Counted from the first letter of the stretch, positions 6,088 to 63,925 are shown. The stretch is DNA of 64,000 nucleotides from IMGVR_UViG_3300029911_000001:124001-188000; one strand, 5' to 3'. The notes: generated from the sequence alone by a model not told the origin. Program-made: numbers and translations.

Positions 6088-6160
6088 AAGTCCTTTGTTT
6101 TCCTAAAGGTAGATTTTTATTTCAAACTGTGGTTCAGTTCTATGATGCTATTGGTATACT

Positions 6161-8421: not shown

Positions 8422-8644
8422 AAGCCCGTTTACTGAGAATCACCGGCAGACAGACCTCCGTACTTATCTAATACGCCGGAAATTACGTGCAGGGGGTATT
8501 AGTCTGCATCTGGGAAACGTACACCCAGCGAAACAACTAATGGTAGGAGGTTACCCCATCACCTCCTACCCCTTTTCTAATGGTGGGGAGAAAGAATGGG
8601 GATGCACATTTTCACCCAAATATCTATTCCATGTATGGTGACCA

Positions 8645-17976: not shown

Positions 17977-18579
17977 ATGACATTTGATAGGTACGGACGT
18001 AAACTGAAGAGACGCCGGACGTGGAAGGCTCTACCCCTACTCTGGATTGGTGCAGCAGTGGTAGGAGCCGCCATTGCCGCCCCGACATGCAGCAAGTTCA
18101 TCCCGACCACGACCGTGACCAAGGTGAAGAACCGTGTGAGTAAGACCACGGCAGACGCTTGGGCGAAGTGGCGTATCGCCCACCCCAACTGGAAGCCCAA
18201 TCCCAAGGTCGTTAGACCAAAGTACAAGATGACGACTCAGGAAGCTGTAGCTAAGGTAGAGTTCGCTTGCCAAGCTACTATTCTCGATGTGACCCCGCCA
18301 GAGATTCAACTGGATACGGTCTCGCCGCCCACCATTGAGTTGGCCCTGACCCCGGTCGAGCCTCCGCCTGTCACCCCTGATGTGGTAACCGACACTACGC
18401 CGGACACGCCTCCGGACACGCCCCTGACGCCTGTGCTGTTCACTGCACTGTCCTCACCGCCCACGCTCATCCCCTCGTCGCCCCTTGCCCCCACTCCTGA
18501 GCCGGGAAGCCTGTGGCTGATGGGCACTGGTTTGCTCTTCGTCGCAGCCGGTGTGCAGTATCAGAAAAGAAAAGTGTAG
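17977..18579 (+). CDS. PEP-CTERM sorting-domain protein
   Basis: C-terminus TPEPGSLWLMGTGLLFVAAGVQYQKRKV (PEP, TM helix, basic tail); N-terminal hydrophobic segment; Pro/Thr-rich linker. Confidence 0.8.
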   Translation: MTFDRYGRKLKRRRTWKALPLLWIGAAVVGAAIAAPTCSKFIPTTTVTKVKNRVSKTTADAWAKWRIAHPNWKPNPKVVRPKYKMTTQEAVAKVEFACQATILDVTPPEIQLDTVSPPTIELALTPVEPPPVTPDVVTDTTPDTPPDTPLTPVLFTALSSPPTLIPSSPLAPTPEPGSLWLMGTGLLFVAAGVQYQKRKV

Positions 18580-18619
18580 CGTTTTTCTGACAACCGTGTA
18601 TTATAGGTTCATACCACAT

Positions 18620-18800
18620 TGGCTTAGCAAGCTACAGCTTCGAGGTATCAGACTTACGGGGTCGATGTGGAGTAAGGCCCCGGAAACCCTTTGTGGAAGT
18701 AGAAGCTGGCACTGTCAGGGCACCGGGGACAGCAAACCCCTCAAGCCGACGAAAGACTCAGGGAACGGTAGCAACCCGGACTGACCCACAAAGCTAATTG
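18620..18800 (+). ncRNA. Candidate structured ncRNA, family unknown; strand assumed
   Basis: No ORF; long-range CTTTGTGG(18689)/CCACAAAG(18786) pairing enclosing several hairpins; TATTAT at 18599. Confidence 0.4.
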
Positions 18801-18821
18801 AAGAAATTCGAAAAATAGTTG

Positions 18822-18849
18822 TTGCAGTTTTCCCAATTTGTAGTATCTT
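18822..18849 (+). promoter_or_regulatory. Sigma70-like promoter of tRNA operon 1
   Basis: TTGCAG-16 nt-TATCTT. Confidence 0.55.
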
Positions 18850-18869
18850 ATTCAAGAGGACATTTTCAC

Positions 18870-18998
18870 ATGAACAGCACTCGCTCCAACTCGACCGTAG
18901 CCGTAGCCCCCGCAGTAGCGGTCGGCGTCGTGCGTGTCGCAGCCGCCGCTGAAGATTGCGCGGGAGGCGAGATGCTGGCCTTGGGTGGTGGAAACTAA
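18870..18998 (+). CDS. 42-aa attenuator-like leader peptide (Val/Ala/Gly/Glu/Asp/Cys-rich)
   Basis: RBS AGAGGA; MNSTRSNSTVAVAPAVAVGVVRVAAAAEDCAGGEMLALGGGN*. Confidence 0.75.
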   Translation: MNSTRSNSTVAVAPAVAVGVVRVAAAAEDCAGGEMLALGGGN

Positions 18999-19053
18999 CT
19001 AAGTTAGAATCCAAACCAACCGAGGCCACCCTAACCGGGTGGCTTTCTTATTT
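18977..19053 (+). terminator. Overlapping antiterminator (18977-19027) and intrinsic terminator (19023-19053)
   Basis: Terminator AGGCCACCC-TAACC-GGGTGGCTT plus TCTTATTT; GGCCTTGG(18977) can pair with CCGAGGCC(19020). Confidence 0.8.
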
Positions 19054-19066
19054 GGTGGCAACAAAT

Positions 19067-19142
19067 GCGGGGGTAGATTAGCGGCTAAATCATCGCCCTT
19101 ACAAGACGACTATCGTGGGTTCGAGTCCCACCCTCCGCACCA
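19067..19142 (+). tRNA. tRNA-Val(UAC)
   Basis: Cloverleaf, loop CT-TAC-AA, encoded CCA. Confidence 0.9.
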
Positions 19143-19172
19143 AGATTCGCAGTATTAGATGTTCAGATGTAT

Positions 19173-19247
19173 GCGGGATTAGTTCAGTGGTAGAACGCTT
19201 CCTTGCCAAGGAAGAGGTCGAGGGTTCGAATCCCTCATCCCGCTCCA
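19173..19247 (+). tRNA. tRNA-Gly(GCC)
   Basis: CTTCC-TT-GCC-AA-GGAAG; CCA. Confidence 0.95.
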
Positions 19248-19309
19248 AAAGTTTAGAGTCTCAGTGACTCGATGATGTATAGGTATTTGACAATTTAGGT
19301 TTGAATTTT

Positions 19310-19383
19310 GGGGTCGTCGTTCAGTGGGAGGACAACACGCTTGCACCGTGTCAACAGGGGTTCGAATCCCCTCGGCTCCACCA
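19310..19383 (+). tRNA. tRNA-Ala(UGC)
   Basis: ACACG-CT-TGC-AC-CGTGT; G3.U70; CCA. Confidence 0.9.
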
Positions 19384-19391
19384 AAAACGCT

Positions 19392-19652
19392 CTAAATGTG
19401 GTAACGTCCACGTTGCAACGTCCCAGATTTGCAAATTGGGTGCACAAAGGGGATGAAGCCCGTCTTTGCTTGTAGCAACTCGGTGGAATTGTGGTTTTTG
19501 TTATAATTGTTTGAGGAGTGGTTGGTACATTTTCTACACCATGAATTAAGGGTTATAGTAGTACCATTCTTATTCCTTCTGGTACGAACCCCAAAATACT
19601 CCTTTGAGGCGGGATGGTTGGTGTTACATTTAGAACACAGCTTGGATTCCAT
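19392..19652 (-). pseudogene. Antisense Zn-finger ORF, probable HNH-type endonuclease remnant
   Basis: ATG with RBS GGAG; KLCSKC...WCRKC; no complete nuclease domain. Confidence 0.45.
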
Positions 19653-19701
19653 TGCTTCTCCTAAGTTAGCTAATACAATGGAATCCAATAGTTGAAAAGA
19701 T

Positions 19702-20030
19702 TGCACCAGAGACTTCGGACAATCGCGACGTGAGCGCAATACTCACTTCGAGGAAATTCGGGGCATCATAGAACAACCTAGTGGGTAACGCCCACGCAGT
19801 GGAACATCACTGACGACAAGTGCCACAGAGACGAGCCTCTTCAGTGAGGAGTGAAACGCGGTAAACTTCTAGGTGATGCAACTTCAAATAGGCCGACAGG
19901 TGCTGTTCGTACCGTTATGAATCGGCGGGTTGAGGGCTAGAGCGTTGTGGTAACACAACGTCGAGACGAATGATTGTCGAACCACCGAAAGGTGGGGAAC
20001 AGAACCCCGGTTATAGAAGTCTCTGGTGCA
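19702..20030 (+). ncRNA. rnpB: RNase P RNA (bacterial type A-like)
   Basis: 15-bp P1 TGCACCAGAGACTTC/GAAGTCTCTGGTGCA; GAGGAAATTCGGGC (19750), AAGTGCCACAGA (19818), GTGAAACGCGGTAAAC (19851), ACAGAACCCCGGTTA (19999). Confidence 0.92.
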
Positions 20031-20040
20031 GTAAAGTTTT

Positions 20041-20157
20041 GAGTGCTCGTACCTCAGTGAACGCCGATGCGATGTTTGCCATCGGGGCGGTAGAGGACGG
20101 CCTACCCGAGCAGTTAGCGGATGGAAGAAGTCATGGGTTCGAACCCCATCGGCACTC
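20041..20157 (+). ncRNA. tRNA-like RNA with a hairpin inserted in the D-loop and no clear anticodon arm
   Basis: D-stem CCTC/GAGG, T-arm ATGGG-TTCGAAC-CCCAT, acceptor-like GAGTGC/GCACTC. Confidence 0.5.
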
Positions 20158-20271
20158 AAATAAGATGGACGACACCTGTCCAAGGACGTTCCACATGTGA
20201 GTGTGGTGTAGGCAAGCGGATATGCTCCGAAGCTGAGTCCAGTGGTGTGACGCCGGGGAGAGCACCGGGCT

Positions 20272-20345
20272 GCGGGATTAGTGTAGTGGTAACACGTCAT
20301 CCTTCCAAGTTGAAGTCAGGGGTTCAAGTCCCCTATCCCGCTCCA
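20272..20345 (+). tRNA. tRNA-Gly(UCC)
   Basis: Loop CT-TCC-AA; CCA. Confidence 0.92.
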
Positions 20346-20438
20346 AGTTCAAGCCATCCCAATACTGACGCACAAAGGCGGGTACGGTTCTAGGGTAATG
20401 GTGCGGGAGGATAACCTAAACCGCAAGTTTAGATTCAT

Positions 20439-20515
20439 GCACCGATAGCCAAGACGGTAAGGCGACAGATTGCAACCCTGTTAATGCGGGAGTTCGATTC
20501 TCCCTCGGTGCTCCA
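20439..20515 (+). tRNA. tRNA-Cys(GCA)
   Basis: Loop TT-GCA-AC; U73; CCA. Confidence 0.92.
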
Positions 20516-20524
20516 AGTTTCAAA

Positions 20525-20600
20525 GGGCGATTAGCTCAGTTGGGAGAGCGTTTCCATGGCATGGAAAAGGTCAAGGGTTCGAGCCCCTTATTGTCCACCA
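20525..20600 (+). tRNA. tRNA-Ala(GGC)
   Basis: TTTCC-AT-GGC-AT-GGAAA (A32-U38); G3.U70; CCA. Confidence 0.93.
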
Positions 20601-20879
20601 GTTTAGAAGAGGATGGAAAACTGGAAAGTTCCCGGTAACGGTGACACAATCCGGCTCACTGGCTCTCTAAAAGACACTGCACGTCTCTAAATGGCAGCGT
20701 AAGCGGCACGACACGTCCACCAAGTTTGGGGTAGCACTAGCGCACACCGCATATCAGGCGCGTGTCGGCAATAGGCTTGCAGATAGAAGTAAAGCTGCGG
20801 AACACAGTTTGAACTCGTGGTACGGACACAGTTTCGTCGTCAGCCGGTGAGCTAACACCGCTGGTGCCACGCGAAGTTT

Positions 20880-20954
20880 GGTGCTGTATCATAATGCCAA
20901 TGAACTCCCCTGTCGAGGGAGCTTATGAGGGTTGAACTCCCTTCAGCACCGCCA
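20880..20954 (+). tRNA. tRNA-Asp(GUC), atypical D/T loops
   Basis: CTCCC-CT-GTC-GA-GGGAG; G73; D-loop lacks GG; T-loop TTGAACT. Confidence 0.75.
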
Positions 20955-21014
20955 TTTTTTCAACTACAGAACCCTTATATGTAAGTCACTTCTGATACAT
21001 ATAAGGGTTCGATA

Positions 21015-21635
21015 ATGGCTAAAAAGAAAGAGAAAGAAGAAGCAATCAGGTTACGTGTTGAACACCGTCTCTCATTGGAAGTTATTTCTAAACAGTTAGG
21101 TGTATCTCAGAGTAGTTGCTCCTTATGGTTGAGAGGTTACCCTCTATCGGAGCAAGAAAAGAGCACTCGCAAACCCCCCTCTACGAAAGGTATTGCGCGT
21201 AAGATTCGGGGGGATAGGTCAAAGTTTTCTAATGTAGTTGACGGGCAGGAACTTACAAAATCTCGTAAGGGGAGAATAGCTGAATCTGCAATTCTATTTC
21301 GGTTGGCTCTTCATGGTCTGACCCCCTACGGTTCCCCGTTTGATGGTGATAAGACCGATTGGGTAGTAGAGAATGCACAAGGTAGAACTATGAAGGTACA
21401 AGTGAGGTGGGCGCGTGAGGCTAGAAAAGGGCTACCTTTTATCTCACTTCGAATTTCGGATGGGAGGCACAACACTCGTCGGTACACGGAAAATGAATTT
21501 GACTTTATTGTGGCTTACGACCTGTACACAGATACGGCTTATGTATTTAATCAAGAGGATGTAAGGAACAATACCGCACTTATCGCAGTATCAGAGGAGA
21601 GGGCGGAGAAGTGGCAACAGTTACTGGATTTTTGA
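21015..21635 (+). CDS. Free-standing PD-(D/E)XK endonuclease with N-terminal HTH
   Basis: KGRIAE...TDWVVE...KVQVR...FDFIVAY pattern; inserted in the tRNA array. Confidence 0.75.
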   Translation: MAKKKEKEEAIRLRVEHRLSLEVISKQLGVSQSSCSLWLRGYPLSEQEKSTRKPPSTKGIARKIRGDRSKFSNVVDGQELTKSRKGRIAESAILFRLALHGLTPYGSPFDGDKTDWVVENAQGRTMKVQVRWAREARKGLPFISLRISDGRHNTRRYTENEFDFIVAYDLYTDTAYVFNQEDVRNNTALIAVSEERAEKWQQLLDF

Positions 21636-21648
21636 TGAGGAAACAAGT

Positions 21649-21852
21649 ATGTGTCAAGCGTTTACACCGGACATGCGGAACTTCGATGAGAAGCCGTACA
21701 CACCGGATGAGCAGCGAGTAGTCAAGTACCTAGTTGAACTCACCAATGGAACGATTGGCGGCGGTGACGACCCTATCGGGTTCCTCATCGCGAGTCATGC
21801 AACGCTTTCTGACTTGAATGTGAAGCGTTGTCGAGAGGAAGCACATGGTTGA
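21649..21852 (+). CDS. Small hypothetical protein
   Basis: ATG with RBS GAGGA. Confidence 0.55.
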   Translation: MCQAFTPDMRNFDEKPYTPDEQRVVKYLVELTNGTIGGGDDPIGFLIASHATLSDLNVKRCREEAHG

Positions 21853-22009
21853 CTTTGAAGCAAACGGTTGGCGTAAGTTGACAGCAGAAGAGCAGGAAGG
21901 CATTCGTGAGTTTGAGCGAGTGATGAAGGAAGAGACCATACCTGCCATCGTGAAGACTATCCGTCTCCGTCAGGAATTGGCTAATGAATATCGAGGAATT
22001 TTGTACTAA
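21845..22009 (+). CDS. Small hypothetical protein (54 aa), not in the ORF track
   Basis: MVDFEANGWRKLTAEEQEG...; RBS GAGGA; overlaps the previous stop. Confidence 0.55.
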   Translation: MVDFEANGWRKLTAEEQEGIREFERVMKEETIPAIVKTIRLRQELANEYRGILY

Positions 22010-22014
22010 TGTTT

Positions 22015-22091
22015 GGGGATGTAACTCAGTCGGTCAGAGTATTCGCCTGTCGAGCGAAAAGTCGCGGGTTCGAACCCCGTCATCCCCGCCA
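22015..22091 (+). tRNA. tRNA-Asp(GUC)
   Basis: TTCGC-CT-GTC-GA-GCGAA; canonical; CCA. Confidence 0.95.
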
Positions 22092-22096
22092 AGTGT

Positions 22097-22200
22097 GAGA
22101 TGTAGTGTCAAGGTGTGGCGTTTGTATACGAACGTGAGCATCATTAGAACGGGGCCTTGTTGCGGCTCTGGTGTGGGTGAAAATCCCGCCGTCTCCGCCA
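22097..22200 (+). ncRNA. Degenerate tRNA-like unit
   Basis: GAGATG/CGTCTC acceptor-like, ends GCCA; T-like arm GTGGG-TGAAAAT-CCCGC; no 7-nt anticodon loop. Confidence 0.4.
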
Positions 22201-22271
22201 GTTTCAAATGTTGCAGCACGGTTTCAGTGAGTCCTGAAATGGCTGAAGGTTGGAGTAAGCTGATTGAATCT

Positions 22272-22346
22272 ACACCCGTAGCTCAGAGATAGAGCGTCTC
22301 CTTGACGTGGAGAGGGTCGGGGGTTTAATTCCCTCCGGGTGTACCA
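22272..22346 (+). tRNA. tRNA-Val(GAC)
   Basis: TCTCC-TT-GAC-GT-GGAGA; CCA. Confidence 0.92.
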
Positions 22347-22374
22347 AAGCAGGAGAGTTTGAAGTTACCAGAGT

Positions 22375-22432
22375 CGGGATGTAGCTCAGTGGTAGAGCCT
22401 AAAAGTCGCAGGTTCGATTCCTGCCTTTCCTA
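22375..22432 (+). pseudogene. tRNA-like unit lacking the anticodon arm
   Basis: Canonical D arm GCTC-AGTGGTA-GAGC joined by CTAAAAGTC to canonical T arm GCAGG-TTCGATT-CCTGC; weak acceptor stem. Confidence 0.7.
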
Positions 22433-22644
22433 TACGACGCTCTGGTGGACTGAAAGGCGGGAAGCGTATCGTGCTCGTATTCACATTGCGCGTACCGCCC
22501 AAGTTTATTAATGATGAGTTTCAAGTTCGAGAGTTGGAACCAGCAGCGGAACATATAGCAGCCCTCACAGCTATCGCGTGCTAGGTAAGGGCAAGGACGA
22601 AGAGGCAGCATGGAAAGATGCTGTCCGTCGCAAGAAACAGATTT

Positions 22645-22723
22645 GGGGCAAGGGACTGCCGGGGGTGGTCACCTCATTCGCAATGAGGAATTCAGCGGGG
22701 TTCAAGTCCCCGTTGCTCCACCA
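22645..22723 (+). tRNA. tRNA-Ala(CGC), atypical D arm
   Basis: CCTCA-TT-CGC-AA-TGAGG; GGGGCAA/TTGCTCC with G3.U70; CCA. Confidence 0.85.
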
Positions 22724-22731
22724 AAAGTTTC

Positions 22732-22806
22732 GGGGTTATAGCTCAGAGGGAGAGCACCGCATTTGCAATGCGGGGGTCGAGATTTCAAAATTCTCTAACT
22801 CCACCA
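22732..22806 (+). tRNA. tRNA-Ala(UGC), second copy
   Basis: CCGCA-TT-TGC-AA-TGCGG; G3.U70; CCA. Confidence 0.88.
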
Positions 22807-22826
22807 CTTTATTAGTCAAAAGTTTC

Positions 22827-22904
22827 GGGCGGTCTGGAATAAGAGTTTCAGACAGGCTGCACATAGAGGCAGAAGGGTGAGTTCGAATCCCTTCACGTCC
22901 ACCA
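22827..22904 (+). ncRNA. Degenerate tRNA-like unit with Ala-type acceptor end
   Basis: GGGCG/CGTCC-A-CCA (G3.U70); GTTCGAAT in an enlarged T-loop; anticodon unresolved. Confidence 0.45.
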
Positions 22905-22921
22905 ATTTTGAGGTTGATTGA

Positions 22922-23179
22922 ATGAAGTTCACACGTCGTCAGTTCTTCGCAGGGCTCCCGGTATTCATCATGCCGGGGTGGATGAAGGCGATAGCCTCAT
23001 GGTTCCAGCCTGAGGTCGCCGTAGTAAAGGCTCCTCTAATCAAGGGCTCGACCCAACTAAATGATGTCCTGCCAAAGCGTGTGATGGTACCAACGTTCGA
23101 AATAGTTTCGTGTCCGACAATCTTGCTCAAGGAAATCAAGGAGCGTAGGTTCAGGATACAAAGTGGGCCGGTAGCATAA
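22922..23179 (+). CDS. Small protein with twin-arginine-like N-terminus
   Basis: MKFTRRQFFAG; RBS GAGG. Confidence 0.55.
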   Translation: MKFTRRQFFAGLPVFIMPGWMKAIASWFQPEVAVVKAPLIKGSTQLNDVLPKRVMVPTFEIVSCPTILLKEIKERRFRIQSGPVA

Positions 23180-23243
23180 TGGGAATGCACATTCCTTGCG
23201 GCGAGTAACCGCACCCACCCGGCTCCAGTTTGAAAGGAGCTTC

Positions 23244-23426
23244 ATGGCTAAGTACACAGTACGTAACAAGGAAGGGCACCTTCTCGGAAGGACTGATAGC
23301 CCTGAGGTTTTGGTAGAAGAGATTTGCGAAGTATGTGAGAAGCAAGGAATTATTTACCACGTACACCCCGAGTCGGAAGAGCATAAAGGGTCTCCTAGCT
23401 TTCGACCAATGAAGTTTAGCAGATGA
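23244..23426 (+). CDS. Small hypothetical protein
   Basis: ATG with RBS AAGGAG. Confidence 0.55.
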   Translation: MAKYTVRNKEGHLLGRTDSPEVLVEEICEVCEKQGIIYHVHPESEEHKGSPSFRPMKFSR

Positions 23427-23452
23427 AATGGAAAAGCACGAAGGTTAAGTTT

Positions 23453-23527
23453 GGCCCTGTCCTCCAACGGTCAGGAGAGTGGGTTCTCAACCCGACAACA
23501 AGGGTTCAACTCCCTTCAGGGCCACCA
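23453..23527 (+). tRNA. tRNA-Glu(CUC)
   Basis: Loop TT-CTC-AA; GGCCCTG/CAGGGCC; CCA. Confidence 0.88.
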
Positions 23528-23534
23528 GTTTTAT

Positions 23535-23609
23535 GGCGCATTCGTTCATTGGTTAGGACCGGTGTTTTTCAAGCACCAGAAGAGGTTTCGATTACCTCAT
23601 GCGCTACCA
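23535..23609 (+). tRNA. tRNA-Glu(UUC)
   Basis: GGTGT-TT-TTC-AA-GCACC; CCA. Confidence 0.88.
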
Positions 23610-23992
23610 ATTTCGCTGGGAGGTCGGTGTGGACTCAGGCGACTCGCTGCAACCGAGTAGGCGTTGCGGGAGATATGCGAGGGAAAGATTGATCTTCCTG
23701 TCAGAACATCGGCAGTTGAAGTGGGCACCGGGGCTGAAGGGTCATCGCTAGAACAGGGTGGCCCTTCAGCAAAGTCTGCCGACCATTTGATACAATAGCT
23801 GGATGAGACGAGGCTACCAATGAACTGTACTAAGTGTGGTGAATCAGCCCTCGGAGTAGCTCTTGATGGACTACCTTACTGTCATCGCACAGAGTGTATT
23901 TTATGGAAGGTGGAATTGCAACGGTATCGGGATTTGCAAGCTCTCCCTTTTCCAGCACCGCAGCGACCGTTTGCAAAAAGTTTGGTGTTTAA

Positions 23993-24068
23993 GCGGGATT
24001 AGCTCAGTTGGTAGAGCGTTTCCTTCCCAAGGAAAATGTCGCGGGTTCGAGTCCCGCATCCCGCTCCA
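23993..24068 (+). tRNA. tRNA-Gly(CCC)
   Basis: TTTCC-TT-CCC-AA-GGAAA; canonical; CCA. Confidence 0.95.
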
Positions 24069-28730: not shown

Positions 28731-28854
28731 CGGTCGTATCCTCGTCTCAGGTATCCCAAATAAGGGGTCTATCCATGAGCTTGATAGCCAAAATTATTTT
28801 GTGACTACCGACGCCTATAAGTATAGGGGCATCTCGCCTCGTTATGGGAGTCAC

Positions 28855-31800: not shown

Positions 31801-34800
31801 GCACCGTGTACTGCGACCGTAGCCAACACATCGCACGTTGTCACTATTCTCAGCGGATGCACGTTCCCTAGCCCGATGACAGGGTACGTGTTTCATTTGG
31901 GCGACAGTGTGTCAGGTTCCTTGGATGGCACACTGACCTATCTGTCGCCCACGACCGCCACGATGAATGTCGCGTCTACTTGGACTTCCAGCAGCGGGAT
32001 CAGCGCGACCGTGAACGCCGGAGGTACTGGCTATGCGGTCGGTGATACCGGGACAGTCAATGGCGGAAACAGCAACGCACGGTATTGGGTGCAATCCGTT
32101 TCGGGAGGTGTAGTCACTGGAATTTACATGAACAGCGGTGGGTCTGGATATACAAGTGCAACGGGAGTTGCGACTGCAACGGGAGGCATTCAGCCCGGAA
32201 GCGGCACGGGCCTTACACTCAATACCACCGCAGCATTGACACCGGAAACGCTCTATTTTGGCCCTGATAATTGCACATCGGCAAATGCTTGGTTCGCCGC
32301 CGCAAGTGGAGGAAGAGGTACTCTATCTCCGGGTGTTTATATGTCGTCCTGTCCACTTCTCCAAGGCAGTGCAAATTCATTTTTCATCGAGGGTACAACC
32401 AAGACAAATACCATCCTTGTCGATGCAGACTCTTCATCGCACCCTGATTTTATCGGAGTCGGGAATAACGGCTCCAACTCTGTTTCACACATCGCTAATA
32501 TAAGCGCGGTCGGAAACAAGAATACCACCCGTGGCTGCATCTCGATCTTTGGCCCAACGGATCACACATCGCAAGACTTCTCCTGCTATGATTCGGGCGC
32601 AGCATCCCTATACCTGAACAATGCCGTTTCAGCCAATATAAATCAGTTCTCTTCCGCCCCCTCGAATACTTCGATTGTGCAGCCGGTGAATTGCGTCAAC
32701 TACGTAGCCAGTGGCCCGTCTGAGTTTCACAGTTTGACGTGCGAAGGTGCGTCTGGGTACTCGATCAACAATACTGGACAAATGACGATCACCGCCAGCC
32801 AGATTGATTATGGGTTGCAAGGCCAACTTTACAACAGCAGTACTGGTTACGTGTACATCAACGGCGGGACTCTACTTGGATGTGAGCTGACCACATGCGC
32901 TAATGGAGTGACCAATTATGGCGTAGTAAATGTTGAGGATGGAGGGGTGTCAGTCTCCTATCACGGATATTCTGGCTCGATCTTCTATGGCTCGAATGTT
33001 GCGCTCGATGGTCTAAACTCTACCTTTGTGTTTGATTCTGGGTCGCTATGCACAATCGCCGGGTTAAGACTTGGACTAAATGGGATCACAGACAATGCAG
33101 GATGCGCCATCGCCGGACCAACTGTAAATGAGAGCACCGGAGTTGGGACTGTAGACTATCCAACGTCGCAATCGTTGCAAACGGGAATTTACGGCAATCA
33201 ACTAATAATGGCTTCCGGTCCTCTCGCCTTTAGATATGGCTGCGCTACTTATGGTAATTCTTCATGCAACGTGACTCCAATGGCACAGGTGCCGCTTGCC
33301 GCATCGACCACATGGGCGATTCAATTTCAAGGGCAGTGGAACACTGACACTACAGTTCCATTCATCAAGACCGTGACTTATGCCAGTCCTACATTCACGG
33401 TTGCAGGACAGACGGTAACATGCAAGCAGGCTACCACGAATTTCAATACCACTCGCTCCGGTCAGTTTGTCTGCTATATTGCTCCTTCATCCATCGGTCA
33501 GGTTGGATTTACGGGGTCGTGGATTATCTATCCGAACGGAATGAATACGCCGACAGGACTCGGTGCCCCTTATTGTGCTGCCGGGATATGCAACTCTACT
33601 GGCACAGCGTGGGGTTCCAGTTATGGAATCGTGGGCTCAGGGTCAAATGTAGTTCTGGCAACGTCTCCAACCCTCCAAAATAGTTTGACGGTCACTAATG
33701 CAGGTAACGTGTCTTTGACACTGACAGATACAGCCACTGGCACCATCAGCAACACCGAGTTGCTAGGAGATGGTTCGGTAAATCACTACGACGACACAGC
33801 AGTTGTCAATTACTTTGATTATGCTAGTGGCGTTTCCAACCTCTATCTATCCACTAATCAAACTACCACGACGTTTCCAAATACGTTCAATGCATTCCCG
33901 CATGGGCTTTATGCGGGAAGCACTAACCAGTTCCAGATTGATGCCAGTGGCAACGTGACAGCACCCTCTGTCAATGTGTCAGCCACAAACTACCCATTAT
34001 TTGGTAACATCCCCGGAGTCGGGAATGTGTGGTCCGCTGTGAATAGTAACTGCAAACTTTCGCAGTTGTCTGGCGGGTCGGGTGGTTACACTGATGGAGG
34101 GTACTGCTCCACACAACAATTCCTTAGCACTGTTCCCGGGTGGAACGATCTTGGAACTATTGGTGCTTATCTTCCAGCCGCGCAGAGTATTACGATGAAC
34201 AACTACTCAACTGGAATTGAGTCAGTGTTGGCTATTCAAGTAAACTCCCCGGCGGGAGGAGACCAGAATGGCATCGACTTCCAAGATCACGTTCGCAACG
34301 CTCTGAATCATGGAGGAGATCAAGGCCAGTCTGACCTTCAAATTCAGTCCTACGAGGGAGGAGAACCCACAGGGACAGTAACATCAGTCACACCTGTAGC
34401 TTCTGGAGTTCAAGTTGCACTAACATGCTCTGCGAACTGTGACCAGATGGGAATCATGTCTGGCCCACTGGTCGATATGACAGAGGCAATTCCTGCCACG
34501 GTTACTTACGTCAGCACATCGGGCGGTTTGGCTACGGTAACGTCCAGCAATACTGTTCCCGTTTCGACATCGGGTACGCTCGCCAGTGCTGCCAATGCTC
34601 AATGGTCAAACGCGACAACTTATCCTTCGGGCATCATCGTTCTATACATAGGAGCGGCGTACTACCAAAGTTTGCAAAACACAAACGTTGGGCATGAGCC
34701 GGATACCTCTCCTAGTTGGTGGACACTAGTATCTCCGCCTAGCGGGAGGCTATCCTCGAACATTGTAACGTGGAACATGAACACCGGCACTACTCTGACA

Positions 34801-37275
34801 GCCGGGGAGCTATGCGGTATCGGTGCAGGAGATGCGTCCGCTCTATATGAGATAACGCAGCTGACCTCAGTAGGCACGCCCTCCGGTGGAGTGCAGAGTG
34901 TGACCGCAAATCTCTACAATTCGCACGCCATTGGAGAACCTTTCTCCTGCGGAGGCATGGTTGGTTGGCTGGCGATCTACAAGAATTATGAACCCAACGG
35001 CCAGATGTACGCTGACAACATATACGCTTCGACTGGAGTGAACACACTCATTATCGGGCATCGGGCGGCTAACTTCTACACCAACTCTCTCCCCTCGACC
35101 TTTGCGGAGCCGGTAGCAATAGTTCCCGGTGCAGACATTGTTGGCGTGACCAATCCATCCACTGGAAATCCAGATGGAGGCTTTGCATATACTGAACCAG
35201 CACCATCGGGGACGTACACCGTTGGTCACAGCATCGTGAACCTGAACAACATTTCGGCTACGTATACAAACAGTTTTATGGACACAAATATCAATAACCC
35301 ATTTGCGGAGCGTAATACTCATGCCAATATCTTCCAAGGCAATTTTCTTGGCGGAGGTGCAAATGTGAACACTGGGTTCAACTACAACTTTACCGGCAAT
35401 GGCCAGCCTTCCTACGATCTAAATTATCTGGGCAACGGTGCTAATATCACCGCGTGGTCTATCAGCGGGGCTAACGTCGCCACATTCACCGGAAACAACA
35501 ACTTTTTGGCTGGTCAGAAATTCCGTCTCGGAGGCTTCGGTACATCCACTTTCTTCAACGGCCAAGTGGTGACTATTCTTTCCTCTGGTCTTTCGAGCAC
35601 ACAGTTCGAGGCTAACTTCACACATTCTAGCGGCTCTGGTACGGAGGCAGGAAATGCGCAAGGACTGTATCTGCCTCCATACTTTGACTATGTGGAAGGC
35701 CCGATTTCGGCTGGGCTTGTTCTTTCCGGCTGGCCGACTGGCCCTGCTTATGGACAGATCGGTGTAGCTGGAAACAGTTGCGGAACGTTCGTACTTTGTA
35801 TCGGACCTAGTGGATTTGGTCCTGATTCGCTTGCTGGAGGGATCGGGCATCTATTCCATGCATACACCGGCGAAGAGTTGGATGTGAACACCAATACACA
35901 CACCTTCAATTTTGTTGGAAATATCAACCTAACCGGAGCACTGACCTACTCAGGTCCAATTGTCAATACTTACAGGCAGACCCAAAATGGAGGAGCTTAC
36001 CTTGCTGGGTGGGCGGGTGATAACGGATGCCCGGCTGGTCCGTACAACGTCATGGGTCTGGAGTTCGGAGTTCCTCCGACATTCGCCACTGTGGGTAAGG
36101 ATAAGTGCGGTGCGCTCAACATTGTGAATGGCGAGGCTCCTACTGAGTTCCGAATGGGCGACGAGTACGGTTATGGTGCTGGTGTAATGGGGCACGTAAG
36201 TTTCAACTCTTCAGACCACGGGCCAAACTATTTTTCTAGCTGGCTGCAATCATGGATTTCCAGCGGGTCTTACGGGACTGATTACAGTCCCAACACGGTT
36301 CCTTATCAGTTTTTCCAGCAAGCAGTAGGCACGAGCACTCCGGTCAACTATGCATGGGCGGATGAGTGGCACGTCTTCAACACACTCAAAGGATTCAAGA
36401 CCCAACAGGTACAGCCTTTGCAGGCTATTCCAGTAGCGACAGGTAGCACAACAGGTGGAACTCTTGCGGCTAACCAGTACTCCTTCGTCATAACTGGCAC
36501 GACCACAACAGGAGAAACTACAGCCAGCCAGACTGCCAACTGCGTAACCACAACTGGCAGCACGAGCAGCATCAGCCTGACGTGGACAGCGATGACTGGG
36601 GCGACAGGATACAAGGTCTACCCTGCCGTTGGAAACTGTGCTGGAGGGCAGGCTGGTACCGCTAATGCTGCTTTCACCGTCTCCGGCACGAGCTACACAT
36701 TCACAGCCTTCACCTCTGGCTCAGTCGTCCCGCCGACTGAGAATACGACGGGGTATGGGATCGATGCCAGTGGCAACGCAACGGTGGCGAGTCTATCTGC
36801 TACCAGCAATATCACAGACTCCGCCCTTACCCCCGGCAACTGTGTGCAGGCGGGTACGGGTGGGCTGCTGATTGATACTGGGGGTCCTTGCTATCCATCT
36901 ACGTATAAAGTAGCTAGGTACTGGAGTATCCCCAGTGCAACATTCTCGACTGGAACATTCCTTGGACCAATCTATTTCTACGAATTTCCGATTGGTTCAA
37001 ATACACCTGTGACAACTCCTCTAATGGCGTCACTAACAGGCACAATTAGCTGCTCAGTGGCTCCTACTATTGGGTTATACGACCTAGGAACCTCCGCAAC
37101 CACAGCATTGGGTTCTTCCGCGCTAGTCACCACTTTAGCAACTGGAACAAGTGATGGAGCATACACGGCTAGTGCGAGTTTTCTAGGGTTCCACGGTCAG
37201 CACTACTATCGCGTGGCATTCACGGCTGGCTCCTGTACGACTGCCCCGCAGATTGATTTTACCGTAGACTGGTAG
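28855..37275 (+). CDS. Giant (about 2806 aa) signal-peptide-bearing multidomain beta-helix/glycan-interacting protein
   Basis: ATG 28855 with RBS GGGAG; MFKLFQKFGILVTLVFAFGCSIGQA-Q; two pectate-lyase-3-like starts (DSTCAIRAAI...LYLPVGNY; DNCTSANAW...GTLSPGVY); CBM5/12-like module (WSNATTY...YYQSL...EPDTSPSWW); Fn3-like module near the C-terminus. Confidence 0.75.
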   Translation: MFKLFQKFGILVTLVFAFGCSIGQAQINPEQIRWPLLTGTGVPTLSCSSVNYGQPYQNTAVTPNTYYTCGTDGWQIRISLGPKVNATSVAFGAASSCANTADPTMTLDSTCAIRAAIAYVYAHGANGVYPALYLPVGNYKTTAEIRIPCDVWLEGDGVTATVISLTNNAANGITVYGDNSGSGDAWQCVGGMHGLGITAIGAHLYTADQLEIVGSTAYTLRDVLVQGGGGRGINVTGGSERLDAENIFINTVRWPMLWKGNENHLRKLNIADPGNSSDNWCFAQGNCVTTHTFPNFNWSLQQTLVSAVGSGTRASYVVTDTGGAGSTLGVSPIGIGQWFTVSGVTGTTGLNGVFQVASATNGTVTGGCAANRCYTITAVNSTSGTGTGLGSATFQPTIVADRNAAVYASGSTFKIDGGSIKSLESSGCFDIGSTFGSTIANIYCEGYPVNGQPHVNSSVTEGNLPAETTTTASLGASATTVTVVDTSWFPNYVQTASDANSADIIQGKIAPCDYIEPPNTGYNVQSACAPTGVLKGMWEAVQITMTSTGALLQRCQSGSTVTCTAYTSGPVWPSGSLIANGPPGNYSYLKLDTDHFNAIDEPGANWAAYCNDQSSFICGEIIGGGIENGLTTGSSGSTLGRLQQAQILFDNDEWWGGINSASPGSSYYGDGTIKAVGLGIVAQATGSTFGNGYAADSNAVNGKFTDGTANNVNDSAPGFVNVQSADTYYPSSEYNNLSNGMIFSASSGLFRKNLNAYGDPITGNNPGAGSNGYNNGAEVANSTCTYDTPLTSGTHSLNRWCFVGGPGNSGTAAGVEYDTYNTGSSIWVTQFKIDGTGAITFGGVPTFTDAIFQALHMAAPGDKVYLGDPGNWLERDNTLSGATHFAAPGFDFDNNGSGSPLNIMDGAGGTYHGYLCLNLDSCISRNGSSNQFHFGSGAYGASDGALFAANATFGGTLTALNGSINSVMNGATAEFGMSSYLTAPCTATVANTSHVVTILSGCTFPSPMTGYVFHLGDSVSGSLDGTLTYLSPTTATMNVASTWTSSSGISATVNAGGTGYAVGDTGTVNGGNSNARYWVQSVSGGVVTGIYMNSGGSGYTSATGVATATGGIQPGSGTGLTLNTTAALTPETLYFGPDNCTSANAWFAAASGGRGTLSPGVYMSSCPLLQGSANSFFIEGTTKTNTILVDADSSSHPDFIGVGNNGSNSVSHIANISAVGNKNTTRGCISIFGPTDHTSQDFSCYDSGAASLYLNNAVSANINQFSSAPSNTSIVQPVNCVNYVASGPSEFHSLTCEGASGYSINNTGQMTITASQIDYGLQGQLYNSSTGYVYINGGTLLGCELTTCANGVTNYGVVNVEDGGVSVSYHGYSGSIFYGSNVALDGLNSTFVFDSGSLCTIAGLRLGLNGITDNAGCAIAGPTVNESTGVGTVDYPTSQSLQTGIYGNQLIMASGPLAFRYGCATYGNSSCNVTPMAQVPLAASTTWAIQFQGQWNTDTTVPFIKTVTYASPTFTVAGQTVTCKQATTNFNTTRSGQFVCYIAPSSIGQVGFTGSWIIYPNGMNTPTGLGAPYCAAGICNSTGTAWGSSYGIVGSGSNVVLATSPTLQNSLTVTNAGNVSLTLTDTATGTISNTELLGDGSVNHYDDTAVVNYFDYASGVSNLYLSTNQTTTTFPNTFNAFPHGLYAGSTNQFQIDASGNVTAPSVNVSATNYPLFGNIPGVGNVWSAVNSNCKLSQLSGGSGGYTDGGYCSTQQFLSTVPGWNDLGTIGAYLPAAQSITMNNYSTGIESVLAIQVNSPAGGDQNGIDFQDHVRNALNHGGDQGQSDLQIQSYEGGEPTGTVTSVTPVASGVQVALTCSANCDQMGIMSGPLVDMTEAIPATVTYVSTSGGLATVTSSNTVPVSTSGTLASAANAQWSNATTYPSGIIVLYIGAAYYQSLQNTNVGHEPDTSPSWWTLVSPPSGRLSSNIVTWNMNTGTTLTAGELCGIGAGDASALYEITQLTSVGTPSGGVQSVTANLYNSHAIGEPFSCGGMVGWLAIYKNYEPNGQMYADNIYASTGVNTLIIGHRAANFYTNSLPSTFAEPVAIVPGADIVGVTNPSTGNPDGGFAYTEPAPSGTYTVGHSIVNLNNISATYTNSFMDTNINNPFAERNTHANIFQGNFLGGGANVNTGFNYNFTGNGQPSYDLNYLGNGANITAWSISGANVATFTGNNNFLAGQKFRLGGFGTSTFFNGQVVTILSSGLSSTQFEANFTHSSGSGTEAGNAQGLYLPPYFDYVEGPISAGLVLSGWPTGPAYGQIGVAGNSCGTFVLCIGPSGFGPDSLAGGIGHLFHAYTGEELDVNTNTHTFNFVGNINLTGALTYSGPIVNTYRQTQNGGAYLAGWAGDNGCPAGPYNVMGLEFGVPPTFATVGKDKCGALNIVNGEAPTEFRMGDEYGYGAGVMGHVSFNSSDHGPNYFSSWLQSWISSGSYGTDYSPNTVPYQFFQQAVGTSTPVNYAWADEWHVFNTLKGFKTQQVQPLQAIPVATGSTTGGTLAANQYSFVITGTTTTGETTASQTANCVTTTGSTSSISLTWTAMTGATGYKVYPAVGNCAGGQAGTANAAFTVSGTSYTFTAFTSGSVVPPTENTTGYGIDASGNATVASLSATSNITDSALTPGNCVQAGTGGLLIDTGGPCYPSTYKVARYWSIPSATFSTGTFLGPIYFYEFPIGSNTPVTTPLMASLTGTISCSVAPTIGLYDLGTSATTALGSSALVTTLATGTSDGAYTASASFLGFHGQHYYRVAFTAGSCTTAPQIDFTVDW

Positions 37276-60088: not shown

Positions 60089-60880
60089 ATGGGCAATAAC
60101 TACAGCAAGAAAATCAAAGCTGCTAAGACTACCAAGACACGTGCAACGAAAGAGTCGGCGACGATTCCATGGAAGAGAGAGATGGAGCCCGAGGCTCCTT
60201 ATCATCCGAGTGCAAAGCTGGCGACTCTAAAGGTCATTCCACGCTCAGTGAACCAGAAGGCATACCTCGATGCCATCGACAAGCATGATATGGTGTTTGG
60301 TATTGGACCTGCGGGGACAGGAAAGACGTTCCTCGCCGTCGCCAAGGCGGTGCAGTGGCTGGCGAAGAAGAACAACCGCCTCGTGCTCATCCGCCCTGCG
60401 GTTGAAGCGGGTGAGAGTCTCGGCTTCCTCCCCGGCTCCATGCAGGAGAAGGTTGACCCGTATCTCCGCCCCATCTACGATGCTCTTTATGCTCTGATGC
60501 CTTCCCCACTGGTGAACAAGTATCTAGAAGATGGCGTCATTGAAGTGGCTGCGGTGGCGTTTCTGCGAGGTCGTACATTGAACAACTGCTTCGTGATTGT
60601 AGATGAAGCTCAGAACACCACTCGTGAGCAGATGAAGATGATTTTAACTCGTATGGGTGAGGGCTCCAAGTTTGTCATCAATGGTGACGACACGCAGATT
60701 GACATCAGGCCCAAGTTCGACAGCGGCATCATTCATGCCGAGAAGGTACTCGAACGGGTACTCAAGATTCACTTCCAGTATTTCGAGGACGAAGACATTG
60801 TTCGTCACCCGCTGGTGAAGGAGATTGTTGAAGCCTACCGGGAGGAAGAGTACGCGGAGGAAGAGAATGACCCCGCGTGA
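60089..60880 (+). CDS. phoH: PhoH-family ATPase
   Basis: [39 protein letters not shown]. Confidence 0.95.
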
Positions 60881-61295
60881 AGAGTACGAAGCAGTATTGA
60901 AAGAGTACGACCTTCGACAGGCACGGGAAGAGGCTGAGGTCGAAGCTGAATACTACCGGATGGTCAAGCCGATGCTGGAGCAGTACGTCGGTGCTAAGGT
61001 ATGTGACGCCACTATCTCTGCCATCACGTCCGATTGCATGAACCTTGCTCGTCACTTGTCGATGAGGTTCAGGGATGAGTACGAAATCCTTCTCGGCTAC
61101 AACGAGGAAGACCGGTCTATCAATATCGGCTACAGGATCAAGCCTCGCATCTTCGAACCTAATCTTATCCGGGAGCCTTCTGGATTCACTCGGCTGCTTC
61201 CTAAGTATGACGACATCACACTCCCGTCATCTTACGACGACCTATATCTAAAGTCACCGGAGCATGAGGAAGAGGAAGAGAGCGAAGAGGAATGA
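60867..61295 (+). CDS. Hypothetical protein
   Basis: ATG 60867 with RBS GGAAGAG. Confidence 0.6.
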
Positions 61296-61783
61296 CGATG
61301 GGGACGGGTAGACCTAAAAAAGAGAGCACAGAACTCACCTTCTCCTTAGAGAAGGAACAGGAGTTGATGCGTGCTCGGATGGCTGAAAAGTTTCCTTCTC
61401 CAAATACCGTCTCGTTGAGTGCTCAGTTGAACCATCTTGACGAGGTTCCTAGTAGAATCCCGACACCTGAGCCACTTAAAACTAAGGCGGTGCTCTACGC
61501 AAGAGTGTCTACTAAAACACAGAGTCTGGAGAACCAATTACTGGCTCTACGTAAATATGCTGCCCACAAAGGGTTATTGGTGGTAGGAGAATACTCAGAC
61601 TCTATCCACGGCTCTAATTCCATACGAGAGGGGCTAAACACCCTACTATTAGCTGGTAAATGTGGGGAGTTCGGTAAGGTTTTAGTTACAGCCTACGACC
61701 GAGTGGCACGGGATACTAAACTGTTCCTTCACATCGTAGACATCCTCGGGGGGTGGGGAGTGAAACACCATGGAGTCAAATGA
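61292..61783 (+). CDS. Serine recombinase catalytic domain, short C-terminus
   Basis: AVLYARVSTKTQSLENQL, YSD, R.GL..LL, DRVAR. Confidence 0.8.
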   Translation: MTMGTGRPKKESTELTFSLEKEQELMRARMAEKFPSPNTVSLSAQLNHLDEVPSRIPTPEPLKTKAVLYARVSTKTQSLENQLLALRKYAAHKGLLVVGEYSDSIHGSNSIREGLNTLLLAGKCGEFGKVLVTAYDRVARDTKLFLHIVDILGGWGVKHHGVK

Positions 61784-62717: not shown

Positions 62718-62825
62718 TAAAGAAACTGAAGTTCTGCATCGGTTATGCGTGGGCTGCTTGCCGTATGACTTGGGACATGTTGAAGACCCTCGGCAAAGGC
62801 TAACGAAAGAAATTCAAAATAAGTG

Positions 62826-62853
62826 TTTACTTTCTCGAACTTCGTAGTATTAT
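62826..62853 (+). promoter_or_regulatory. Sigma70-like promoter of tRNA operon 2
   Basis: TTTACT-16 nt-TATTAT. Confidence 0.6.
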
Positions 62854-62923
62854 GTATAAGAAGTCGCTGCCGGAGCCATCTCTGCACACGCACATGGCCG
62901 GGGCAAGACAAAAGGAATTGAAA

Positions 62924-63013
62924 ATGAACCGTCTCTCACACAACACGACCCTCGGACTAAGCTTGTATTACCTGCTTAGCAGCGGCCTCGTGCTGTCCGA
63001 CAGACCCTCCTAA
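62924..63013 (+). CDS. 29-aa attenuator-like leader peptide (Leu/Ser/Tyr-rich)
   Basis: RBS AAGGA; MNRLSHNTTLGLSLYYLLSSGLVLSDRPS*. Confidence 0.75.
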   Translation: MNRLSHNTTLGLSLYYLLSSGLVLSDRPS

Positions 63014-63068
63014 CAAGAGCAAGGTTCAAGGATACACGAAGCCGCCCGAAAGGGTGGCTTTTAGTTTT
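62982..63068 (+). terminator. Overlapping antiterminator (62982-63045) and intrinsic terminator (63039-63068)
   Basis: Terminator AAGCCGCCC-GAAA-GGGTGGCTT plus TTAGTTTT; GCGGCCTCGTG(C)TGTCC can pair with GGATACACGAAGCCGC. Confidence 0.82.
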
Positions 63069-63155
63069 GGGCAGATGCGTGAGTGGCTAAAACGGGCTGG
63101 CTGTAACCCAGCTTCCCTAGTGGATTCGGAGGTTCAAATCCTCCTCTGCCCACCA
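63069..63155 (+). tRNA. tRNA-Tyr(GUA)
   Basis: GCTGG-CT-GTA-AC-CCAGC; long variable arm; CCA. Confidence 0.93.
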
Positions 63156-63166
63156 AAATTGAATAC

Positions 63167-63254
63167 GCAAGTAAGGCGACTATCGGTTGGTCGCACCGGG
63201 CTGTAAACTCGTTGCCCTAAAAAGCCGCTGGGGGTTCGACTCCCTCTACTTGCA
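63167..63254 (+). tRNA. tRNA-Tyr(GUA), second divergent copy, CCA not encoded
   Basis: GCAAGTA/TACTTGC-A; loop CT-GTA-AA; long variable arm. Confidence 0.8.
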
Positions 63255-63310
63255 CTTTCGTGACTACCGACCTCTTTAAGTAGAGGTATCTCTTGGAGGT
63301 CGGTAGGTTC

Positions 63311-63925
63311 ATGACATTTTTCACAGTGTATCGAACACAGAATCTGGTGAACGGGAGGTACTACTTCGGCGTCCATAAGACCAAAGACCCCTACGATGGG
63401 TACCTTGGGTCGGGTAAGATTTTGAAACGCGCAATAATAAAGTACGGTGAGCCAGCGTTCATCAAGAATCTCTGCTTCATCTTTGACAATCCAGAGGAGG
63501 CTTTCGCTAAGGAGTTTGAACTAATTGAAACGTACCGGCAAGATTCGCTTTGCTACAACCTGAGACAAGGTGGAAGTGGGGGGTTTGATTGGATAAACCG
63601 GGAAGGCAAAGCAGATTATTCAAGGGCAGCGAAAATGTCTCACGGAAGTAAAAGTAAAAGAGACCCCAACCACTATATGAAGATGGTTGAAGGTAGAAGG
63701 AAAAAGGGGTACGGAGTTGCCCCCCAGTTCATAGGCATCTGGTCAGGACGTAAGCATACATCTGAAACCAAAGCCAAGATGGCGTTGGCAGCAAGCTTGA
63801 GAGTTGGTGAAAAGAACTCGCAACATGGGACTTGTTGGGTAACAGACGGTGTTACAAATATGAAGGTGAAGCAATCAGACCTGTCCACGTACCTTGTGGG
63901 TAGTTGGAAACGAGGAAGAGTATAA
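63311..63925 (+). CDS. GIY-YIG (Seg-like) homing endonuclease
   Basis: TVYRTQNLVNGRYYFGVH, YLGSG, AKEFELI, YNLRQGG, NUMOD3 GRKHTSETK. Confidence 0.9.
   Translation: MTFFTVYRTQNLVNGRYYFGVHKTKDPYDGYLGSGKILKRAIIKYGEPAFIKNLCFIFDNPEEAFAKEFELIETYRQDSLCYNLRQGGSGGFDWINREGKADYSRAAKMSHGSKSKRDPNHYMKMVEGRRKKGYGVAPQFIGIWSGRKHTSETKAKMALAASLRVGEKNSQHGTCWVTDGVTNMKVKQSDLSTYLVGSWKRGRV

Follow-up and report, generated by a model that had tools for sequence, protein, structure and literature searches.

Why phages carry tRNA genes has been debated for decades, with codon compensation, replacement of degraded host tRNAs and escape from tRNA-cleaving defences as the usual proposals, but how the expression of these genes is controlled is almost unexplored. 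A 64,000-nt stretch of DNA from a soil jumbo phage (IMGVR_UViG_3300029911_000001:124001-188000; referred to here as the window) raises this question directly, since two tRNA-Tyr genes near its end are preceded by what resembles a leader-peptide attenuator. The first-pass annotation, made from the sequence alone, described this unit and a similar one 44 kb upstream, and inferred that the phage splits its tRNAs into modules, each with its own sensor. We asked whether these elements are real and conserved, and whether the codons of each leader correspond to the tRNAs that follow it.

We first examined the window itself, and found every element of the annotation to be present almost to the base (see the table). 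The leader ORF contains 8 Leu on five codons (CTC x3, CTG x2, CTA, CTT, TTG), 6 Ser, and a TAT-TAC pair in tandem. Folding of the RNA up to the terminator loop gave the alternative helix with exactly the annotated arms, although it comprises 15 pairs with two interruptions rather than 16 bp, and shares 8 nt, not 7, with the 5' arm of the terminator. The whole hairpin folds at -28.6 kcal/mol, against -17.7 for the terminator. The terminator ends 1 nt before the first tRNA gene and no other promoter-like site was found on the + strand between them, and the tRNAs can therefore be transcribed only through the terminator. The sequence GGGTGGCTTT occurs exactly twice in the window, at the two terminators (19037 and 63052). 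The unit 44 kb upstream is equally real. However, the numbers of promoter-like and terminator-like sites in the region are on their own close to shuffle expectation, and chance is excluded by the recurrence and conservation of the unit in other genomes, described below, and not by the window alone.

Features of the two leader units and their operons (positions counted from the first letter of the window)
Position	Strand	Feature	Basis and remarks
62806..62853	+	A-rich upstream element and sigma-70-like promoter-like site (-35 TTTACT 62826-62831, 16 nt, -10 TATTAT 62848-62853)	Sequence scan; -10 hexamer invariant and A-rich block conserved in an alignment of four lineages; the same promoter type precedes the other tRNA units
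62863..62909	+	5' stem-loop in the leader transcript, an insertion specific to this lineage	RNA folding; absent from the aligned relatives; contains an in-frame ATG at 62894 with no ribosome-binding site, not conserved
62913..62917	+	Shine-Dalgarno-like AAGGA, 6 nt before the start codon	Read from the sequence; GAGG/AGGA-like motifs at the same place in most relatives
62924..63013	+	Leader ORF of 29 codons plus stop (ATG at 62924, TAA at 63011-63013)	Open and alignable in 11 lineages
62957..62979	+	Small hairpin (CTAAGC / GCTTAG) with the Tyr codons in its loop	RNA folding
62982..62998	+	Antiterminator 5' arm, inside codons 20-25 of the leader	RNA folding; pairs with 63030-63045
63030..63045	+	Antiterminator 3' arm	Overlaps the terminator 5' arm at 63038-63045
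63038..63068	+	Intrinsic terminator: 10-bp stem and GAAA loop (63038-63061) plus a T-run	Sequence scan and folding
63069..63155	+	tRNA-Tyr (GTA), copy 1	ARAGORN; Rfam 55.1 bits
63167..63255	+	tRNA-Tyr (GTA), copy 2	ARAGORN; Rfam 36.9 bits
63264..63306	+	Long hairpin whose 3' arm holds the GGAGG ribosome-binding site of the next ORF	Read from the sequence; not followed by a T-run; interpretation inferred
63311..63925	+	Homing endonuclease gene inserted inside the operon, between the Tyr genes and the conserved small ORF	PHROG 314, E 6e-35; absent at this place in the closest relative, L121
63925..64000	+	Start of a conserved 72-aa ORF that belongs to the operon	Continues beyond the window
18810..19053	+	First unit: promoter (TTGCAG 18822-18827, TATCTT 18844-18849), 42-codon leader (18870-18998) rich in Val/Ala/Gly with Asp, Glu and Cys, antiterminator (about 18977-19027), terminator (19022-19046) plus T-run	Sequence scan and folding
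19067..24068	+	Operon of the first unit: 14 tRNAs (Val, Gly, Ala, Cys, Asp, Glu only) and an RNase P RNA (19707-20029)	ARAGORN and Rfam

We then asked what lies beyond the end of the window, where the first-pass annotation had predicted mostly Leu and Ser tRNAs. The window matches a 231-kb IMG/VR contig (IMGVR_UViG_3300029911_000001), and locus L005, which is identical to it over 4876 nt, extends it. The 72-aa ORF is followed by tRNA-Leu tag, cag and caa, an HNH-type ORF, tRNA-Leu gag, another HNH-type ORF and tRNA-Leu caa. Next comes a separate unit with its own promoter, a Pro-rich 21-codon ORF (6 Pro) and two tRNA-Pro genes, then a tRNA-Met directly behind the same promoter type with no leader, and finally a tRNA-Phe behind a 16-codon ORF whose stop lies in the loop of a terminator-like hairpin. 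No further tRNA follows for 9 kb. The prediction is therefore half right, with five Leu genes but no tRNA-Ser in the 19 kb after the window. Ser codons are as enriched as Leu codons in this leader, and we have no explanation for the absence of Ser genes from the operon here and, among the pieces retrieved, in the other metagenomic jumbo-phage relatives. Interestingly, in two relatives, the cultured jumbo phage Tunturi 5 and locus L122, the homologous leader does precede Leu, Cys, Tyr and Ser tRNAs. The idea of a Leu/Ser/Tyr module is therefore right for the family, and the Ser genes may have been lost or moved in this lineage, or may lie elsewhere in the 231-kb genome.

To determine if the unit is conserved, we searched with a word from tRNA-Tyr, with the flanking 315-aa protein and with the 72-aa operon ORF. 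These searches recovered the same leader in ten further lineages, L010, L011 (a 463-kb contig), L016, L116 (332 kb), L117-L121 and L122, as well as in Tunturiibacter phage Tunturi 5 (PP885688), which infects the acidobacterium Tunturiibacter psychrotolerans X4BP1 (PMC11924767). Flanking proteins in these genomes are only 40-71% identical to those of the window, and in every case the order is promoter, short ORF, intrinsic terminator, then Tyr and Leu tRNAs. There are 30 homologues of the 72-aa ORF, and every one whose neighbourhood was retrieved lies beside Tyr/Leu tRNAs. In contrast, a near-identity search of the region in GenBank phages and a tblastn search with the 72-aa ORF found nothing. 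A promoter-pattern scan of IMG/VR returned about 98 mostly chance loci, of which only L047, which carries a homologue of the first unit, and copies of the window's own genome were relevant. A tRNA-Val pattern scan found no further homologues of the first unit, and a search with the protein upstream of that unit found only identical copies. A scan of 185,579 bacterial and archaeal genomes with the leader core gave 13 hits, none of which lay next to tRNAs, consistent with chance, and the unit therefore looks confined to phages.

The pattern of conservation is that of a translated frame. The first 20 codons of the leader align without gaps in six lineages, pN/pS is 0.43 (0.12-0.33 for well-diverged pairs), and the other two frames carry stops. 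Leu columns stay Leu through CTN/TTR exchanges, and one Ser column switches between AGC and TCC. The terminator stem covaries, with 5 of 12 pairs changed on both sides and 95.7% of cells paired in 7 lineages; 0 of 500 shuffles reached this score, and slid controls gave 34-66%. The core of the antiterminator, GGCYTCGTG (in codons Gly-Phe/Leu-Val) against CACGAAGCC, is 85.7% paired in 7 lineages, against 29-46% when slid, and L119 shows a double change from C-G to T-A. This core is mostly invariant, however, and its covariation signal is therefore modest.

Importantly, leader codon content follows the tRNA content of the operon in at least four independent leader types, and this is the strongest argument for a sensing role. 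In the unit under study, every Leu and Tyr codon of the leader is cognate to one of the downstream tRNAs, all five operon anticodons have cognate codons in the leader, and TTA is absent from the leader while no Leu(taa) gene is present. The leader of the first unit is 66% Val/Ala/Gly/Asp/Glu/Cys and its operon holds only those six tRNA kinds, with 11 of 12 distinct anticodons having a cognate codon in the leader. L047 has a leader of different sequence but the same layout and composition (64%) before the same six kinds. Leaders of the Pro units in four genomes carry 3-6 Pro codons, although the Pro units of L011 and L121 lack a canonical T-run terminator, and some leader residues, for example the conserved Cys and Thr in the Pro-unit leaders, have no matching tRNA in their block. 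In L122, 16 of 23 leader residues are Leu, Ser, Tyr, Cys and Met, and its tRNAs are Leu, Cys, Ser, Tyr and Met.

In Tunturi 5, three units partition the amino acids. A Leu/Ser/Tyr/Cys leader precedes Leu, Cys, Tyr and Ser tRNAs, a Gln/His/Thr/Phe/Ala/Pro/Gly/Asn leader precedes those tRNAs, and a Lys/Arg/Asp/Ile/Val/Trp/Glu/Met/Gly leader (annotated gp308) precedes those tRNAs. The comparison of three leaders against three blocks gave [16,4,11; 2,24,10; 4,10,34], with a chi-square of 51.1 (p 2e-10). Against random same-length segments of the phages' own long ORFs, the cognate-codon fraction was 0.36-0.69 versus 0.12-0.42 (P 0-0.009) across six units, and 0.36 against 0.12 (P 0.003) for the unit under study, and overall 64 of 66 distinct anticodons have a cognate codon in their own leader. 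These per-unit P values are moderate, and related genomes are not independent samples. Among all six reading frames of each leader, the ORF frame scored highest in 6 of 6 units, indicating that base composition is not the cause. Tracking was also seen within families. A TTA codon occurs in the leader with Leu(taa) downstream in L117 and L122, and is absent from the leaders of the lineages designated G1, G3, G8, G10 and G11, whose recovered operon stretches hold no Leu(taa). Similarly, internal Met codons occur in the Pro-unit leaders of L011 and L116, where Met tRNAs lie in the block, and are absent where Met has its own promoter or is not in the block. The Cys codon was not a clean marker of this kind, since it agreed with tRNA-Cys for the first unit, Tunturi 5 block A, L122 and the Cys-free leaders, but failed for the Pro-unit leaders and Tunturi 5 block B.

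We next modelled how the helices could form during transcription. When equilibrium folding was performed with ribosomes placed along the leader, L047 and Tunturi 5 block C behaved as textbook switches, but in the unit under study the terminator won for most ribosome positions, and the model therefore needs kinetic, co-transcriptional folding. We therefore considered the RNA available just before the 3' arm of the terminator is made. In all 15 units tested the 5' arm was predicted to be paired with the distal part of the leader ORF (P 0.51-1.00), and a ribosome placed on the distal codons released it. This measure discriminates only moderately, since shuffled leaders also sequestered the G+C-rich arm (mean 0.46-0.64), and five of the 15 units, including the first unit of the window, were not above shuffles. 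The antiterminator evidence is good in most units and weak in some. The distance from the stop codon to the terminator arm is 24-34 nt in all 15 units, and a terminating ribosome would therefore sit inside the antiterminator hairpin.

Taken together, these results suggest that the element is a ribosome-mediated transcription attenuator that gates a phage tRNA operon, a reading to which we assign a probability of about 0.8 in the absence of any experimental or transcript evidence. In the model we propose, the leader is translated while RNA polymerase moves on, and its distal part can pair so as to lock away the 5' arm of the terminator. If decoding is fast, the ribosome would reach the distal codons and the stop codon and melt this helix, the terminator would form, and transcription would end before the first tRNA gene. 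If the ribosome is held up on the Leu, Tyr (and Ser) codons in codons 4-19, the antiterminator would persist and polymerase would read into the two tRNA-Tyr genes, a small ORF and the five tRNA-Leu genes. Translation of the ORF, control of read-through by stalling, and the direction of the switch are inferred. Since the product of the operon is the molecule whose shortage is sensed, the circuit would be a negative-feedback supply controller for tRNA, and the tRNA genes of these phages would be conditional, switched on by a decoding deficit.

Of the alternatives, a leaky or factor-controlled terminator used for timing, with an incidental small ORF and read-through decided by an antitermination protein of phage or host, or by a modified polymerase, as in lambda N/Q-type control, survives best, but we consider it unlikely. 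A promoter followed by a terminator before early genes is common in phages, equilibrium folding favours the terminator regardless of most ribosome positions in this unit, and the same promoter type drives tRNA-Met with no leader at all. However, this does not explain why the ORF is conserved in frame under purifying selection, why its distal codons are predicted to form the helix that competes with the terminator or, above all, why codon content follows the tRNA set of each block. It is slightly less likely still that the ORF encodes a functional hydrophobic micro-protein with its own promoter and terminator, the tRNAs being made by constitutive partial read-through. The core L-S-L-Y-Y-L-L-S is conserved at the peptide level, and gene callers annotate some leaders as genes, gp308 of Tunturi 5 being one example. 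On the other hand, the C-terminal halves are not conserved as peptides but are conserved as a pairing partner of the terminator arm, four unrelated leader types share only the layout and the codon-to-tRNA match, no protein family matched the neighbouring small ORF, and the leaders are 24-49 residues long with low complexity.

Direct sensing of tRNA by the leader RNA, as in a T-box, or of another ligand by a riboswitch, without translation, appears very doubtful. The output is tRNA, T-boxes are the known tRNA-sensing attenuators, and the leader has helices predicted to be mutually exclusive, but no Rfam family, T-box included, matched either leader even at E<=1 (62800-63320 and 18540-19070), the leaders are short (about 145-210 nt) and differ in sequence between units, and the signal lies in one reading frame only. 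A chance arrangement of a promoter-like site, a short ORF and a hairpin, compatible with the near-shuffle site counts in the region, is refuted by the recurrence of the unit and its conservation with covariation across many genomes.

The layout is that of the classical leader-peptide attenuators of bacterial amino-acid biosynthetic operons (trpL, hisL, leuL, thrL, ilvL, pheL), in which a promoter is typically followed by a short translated ORF enriched in the codons to be sensed, mutually exclusive helices and an intrinsic terminator, and in which one leader may sense several amino acids, as in ilvL and thrL, although in the phage units the exclusion of the terminator by the alternative helix is inferred. 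Here the regulated genes are tRNA genes and, in the first unit, an RNase P RNA, rather than biosynthetic enzymes, one leader samples up to nine amino acids and nearly every isoacceptor of its block, and the element is encoded by a phage. None of the Rfam amino-acid operon leader families (His, Leu, Thr, Trp and others) matched, either at E<=1 in the two leader regions or at gathering score in the whole window. In addition, the antiterminator 5' arm lies inside the distal coding region, the stop codon sits within the helix, and a separate anti-antiterminator is predicted only in some lineages. The attenuator of the E. coli pheST operon, with its Phe-rich leader pheM, likewise appears to control a component of the decoding machinery in response to charged tRNA, but it regulates a synthetase for one amino acid, whereas here the tRNA genes themselves would be regulated, in multi-amino-acid blocks. 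T-box riboswitches report on the state of specific tRNAs through transcription attenuation, but bind uncharged tRNA directly and need no translation. In the Anabaena PCC 7120 trn operon, with 26 tRNA genes on a megaplasmid, an accessory tRNA array is kept off and induced when translation is stressed, but through the protein repressor TrcR, and that paper makes no mention of attenuation, a leader, a uORF, stalling or a terminator (PMC10272220). The leaders of inducible resistance genes such as ermC and cat convert ribosome stalling into a change of RNA structure, as is inferred here, but generally sense a drug-bound ribosome through the nascent peptide, while here the codon set, and not a specific arrest peptide, is the conserved and matched feature.

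We found no description of leader-peptide control of tRNA operons or phage tRNAs in open-access papers and preprints, though most subscription journals lay outside this search and a prior description cannot be fully excluded, and the report on Tunturi 5 lists 43 tRNA genes but mentions no leader or attenuator (PMC11924767). A broader possibility, which we regard as only slightly more likely than not, is that a family of soil jumbo and mega phages infecting Acidobacteriota measures the decoding capacity of the host codon family by codon family, each block of tRNA genes being transcribed only when the codons sampled by its leader are read slowly. Such a self-regulating tRNA supply could adapt the phage to different hosts, or to hosts that destroy tRNAs as an anti-phage defence. 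It would also be the first case of leader-peptide attenuation governing tRNA genes, extending the mechanism from amino-acid supply to tRNA supply.

Finally, the small hairpin that holds the Tyr codons in its loop may act as a pause or timing hairpin. Its role is inferred only, but its GCTTAGC arm is invariant in the alignment of the leaders.

A bacterial class A RNase P RNA (179.6 and 165.2 bits) is encoded inside the first tRNA operon, downstream of the Val/Ala/Gly leader, and sits at the equivalent place in a second phage genome (locus L047). The phage seems to carry, and possibly co-regulate, its own tRNA 5'-processing ribozyme. In the same operon, Rfam reported a 58-nt partial tRNA-like match (42.3 bits) right after tRNA-Val(gac), which was not called by ARAGORN and may be a tRNA remnant. 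Directly upstream of the promoter of the first unit, a promoter-like site (TATTAT at about 18600) is followed by about 190 nt of G+C-rich, apparently structured, non-coding sequence, to which nothing in Rfam matched at E<=1.

Positions of additional features in the window and in related phage loci
Sequence	Position	Strand	Feature
Window	12302-15724	+	B12-dependent ribonucleotide reductase with intein
Window	18575-18800		Promoter-like site and G+C-rich non-coding sequence
Window; L047	19707-20029; 3476-3854	+; -	RNase P RNA, class A
Window	22375-22432	+	Partial tRNA-like match
Window	28801-37275; 60089-60880; 61292-61783	+;;	2824-aa ORF; PhoH-like ATPase; serine-recombinase-type protein
Window	63264-63925		Homing endonuclease gene and preceding hairpin
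L005	about 5700-6620		Two HNH-type ORFs
Window; L005	63925-64000; 4801-5019		72-aa ORF
L005	8660-8925		Third (Pro) unit
L005	11964-12059		wcaG RNA motif (RF01761)
L007	19850-19976		16-codon ORF before tRNA-Phe
L011; L116	12796-12885; about 10940		Long-arm tRNA-like genes
L037	6417-6588		Two tRNAs with a CTA anticodon
L141; L142 (PP885688)	11146-11304 and 19212-19379; 8574-8784		Tunturi 5 leaders

A homing endonuclease gene is inserted between the Tyr tRNAs and the conserved small ORF of the second unit, with its ribosome-binding site lying in the 3' arm of a long hairpin. This gene is absent in the closest relative (locus L121). In L005, the locus that extends the window, two HNH-type ORFs sit between the Leu tRNAs further on. 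The conserved small ORF encodes 72 aa, and although it showed no Pfam or PHROG match and its function is unknown, it has 30 homologues, and in every genome whose neighbourhood was fetched it lies inside the Tyr/Leu tRNA operon. Two odd long-arm tRNA-like genes also lie inside the Tyr/Leu operons of the 463-kb (L011) and 332-kb (L116) contigs, one of which was called by ARAGORN as Phe(aaa), 90 nt, while the other was given an undetermined anticodon.

A third unit was found about 5.6 kb beyond the window end, where the same promoter type and a 21-codon ORF with 6 Pro are followed by tRNA-Pro cgg and tgg. Homologous Pro-unit leaders with a conserved F-x-P-C-x-P-T core occur in L011, L116 and L121. 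However, L011 and L121 show no canonical T-run terminator, so the mechanism there is unclear. The 16-codon ORF that lies before tRNA-Phe has a single Phe codon, and its stop codon lies in the loop of a terminator-like hairpin. This may indicate a minimal version of the same device, although the evidence is weak. Between tRNA-Met and tRNA-Phe, a wcaG RNA motif (42.2 bits, just at threshold) lies before a 65-aa ORF.

The GenBank record of the cultured phage Tunturi 5 annotates no tRNA genes, and one of its three leaders is annotated as hypothetical protein gp308. A tRNA nucleotidyltransferase (gp279) and an RtcB-type ligase (gp296) lie between the tRNA blocks of this phage. In addition, a related 103-kb phage contig (L037) carries two tRNAs with a CTA anticodon (amber-suppressor type) next to Lys and Ile tRNAs, which hints at stop-codon reassignment or suppression in that relative.

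Elsewhere in the window, a B12-dependent ribonucleotide reductase is interrupted by an intein with a LAGLIDADG endonuclease domain. Three other genes encode a 2824-aa ORF of unknown function, a PhoH-like ATPase, and a small serine-recombinase-type (resolvase N-terminal domain) protein, and of these, the PhoH-like and recombinase genes lie upstream of the second unit.
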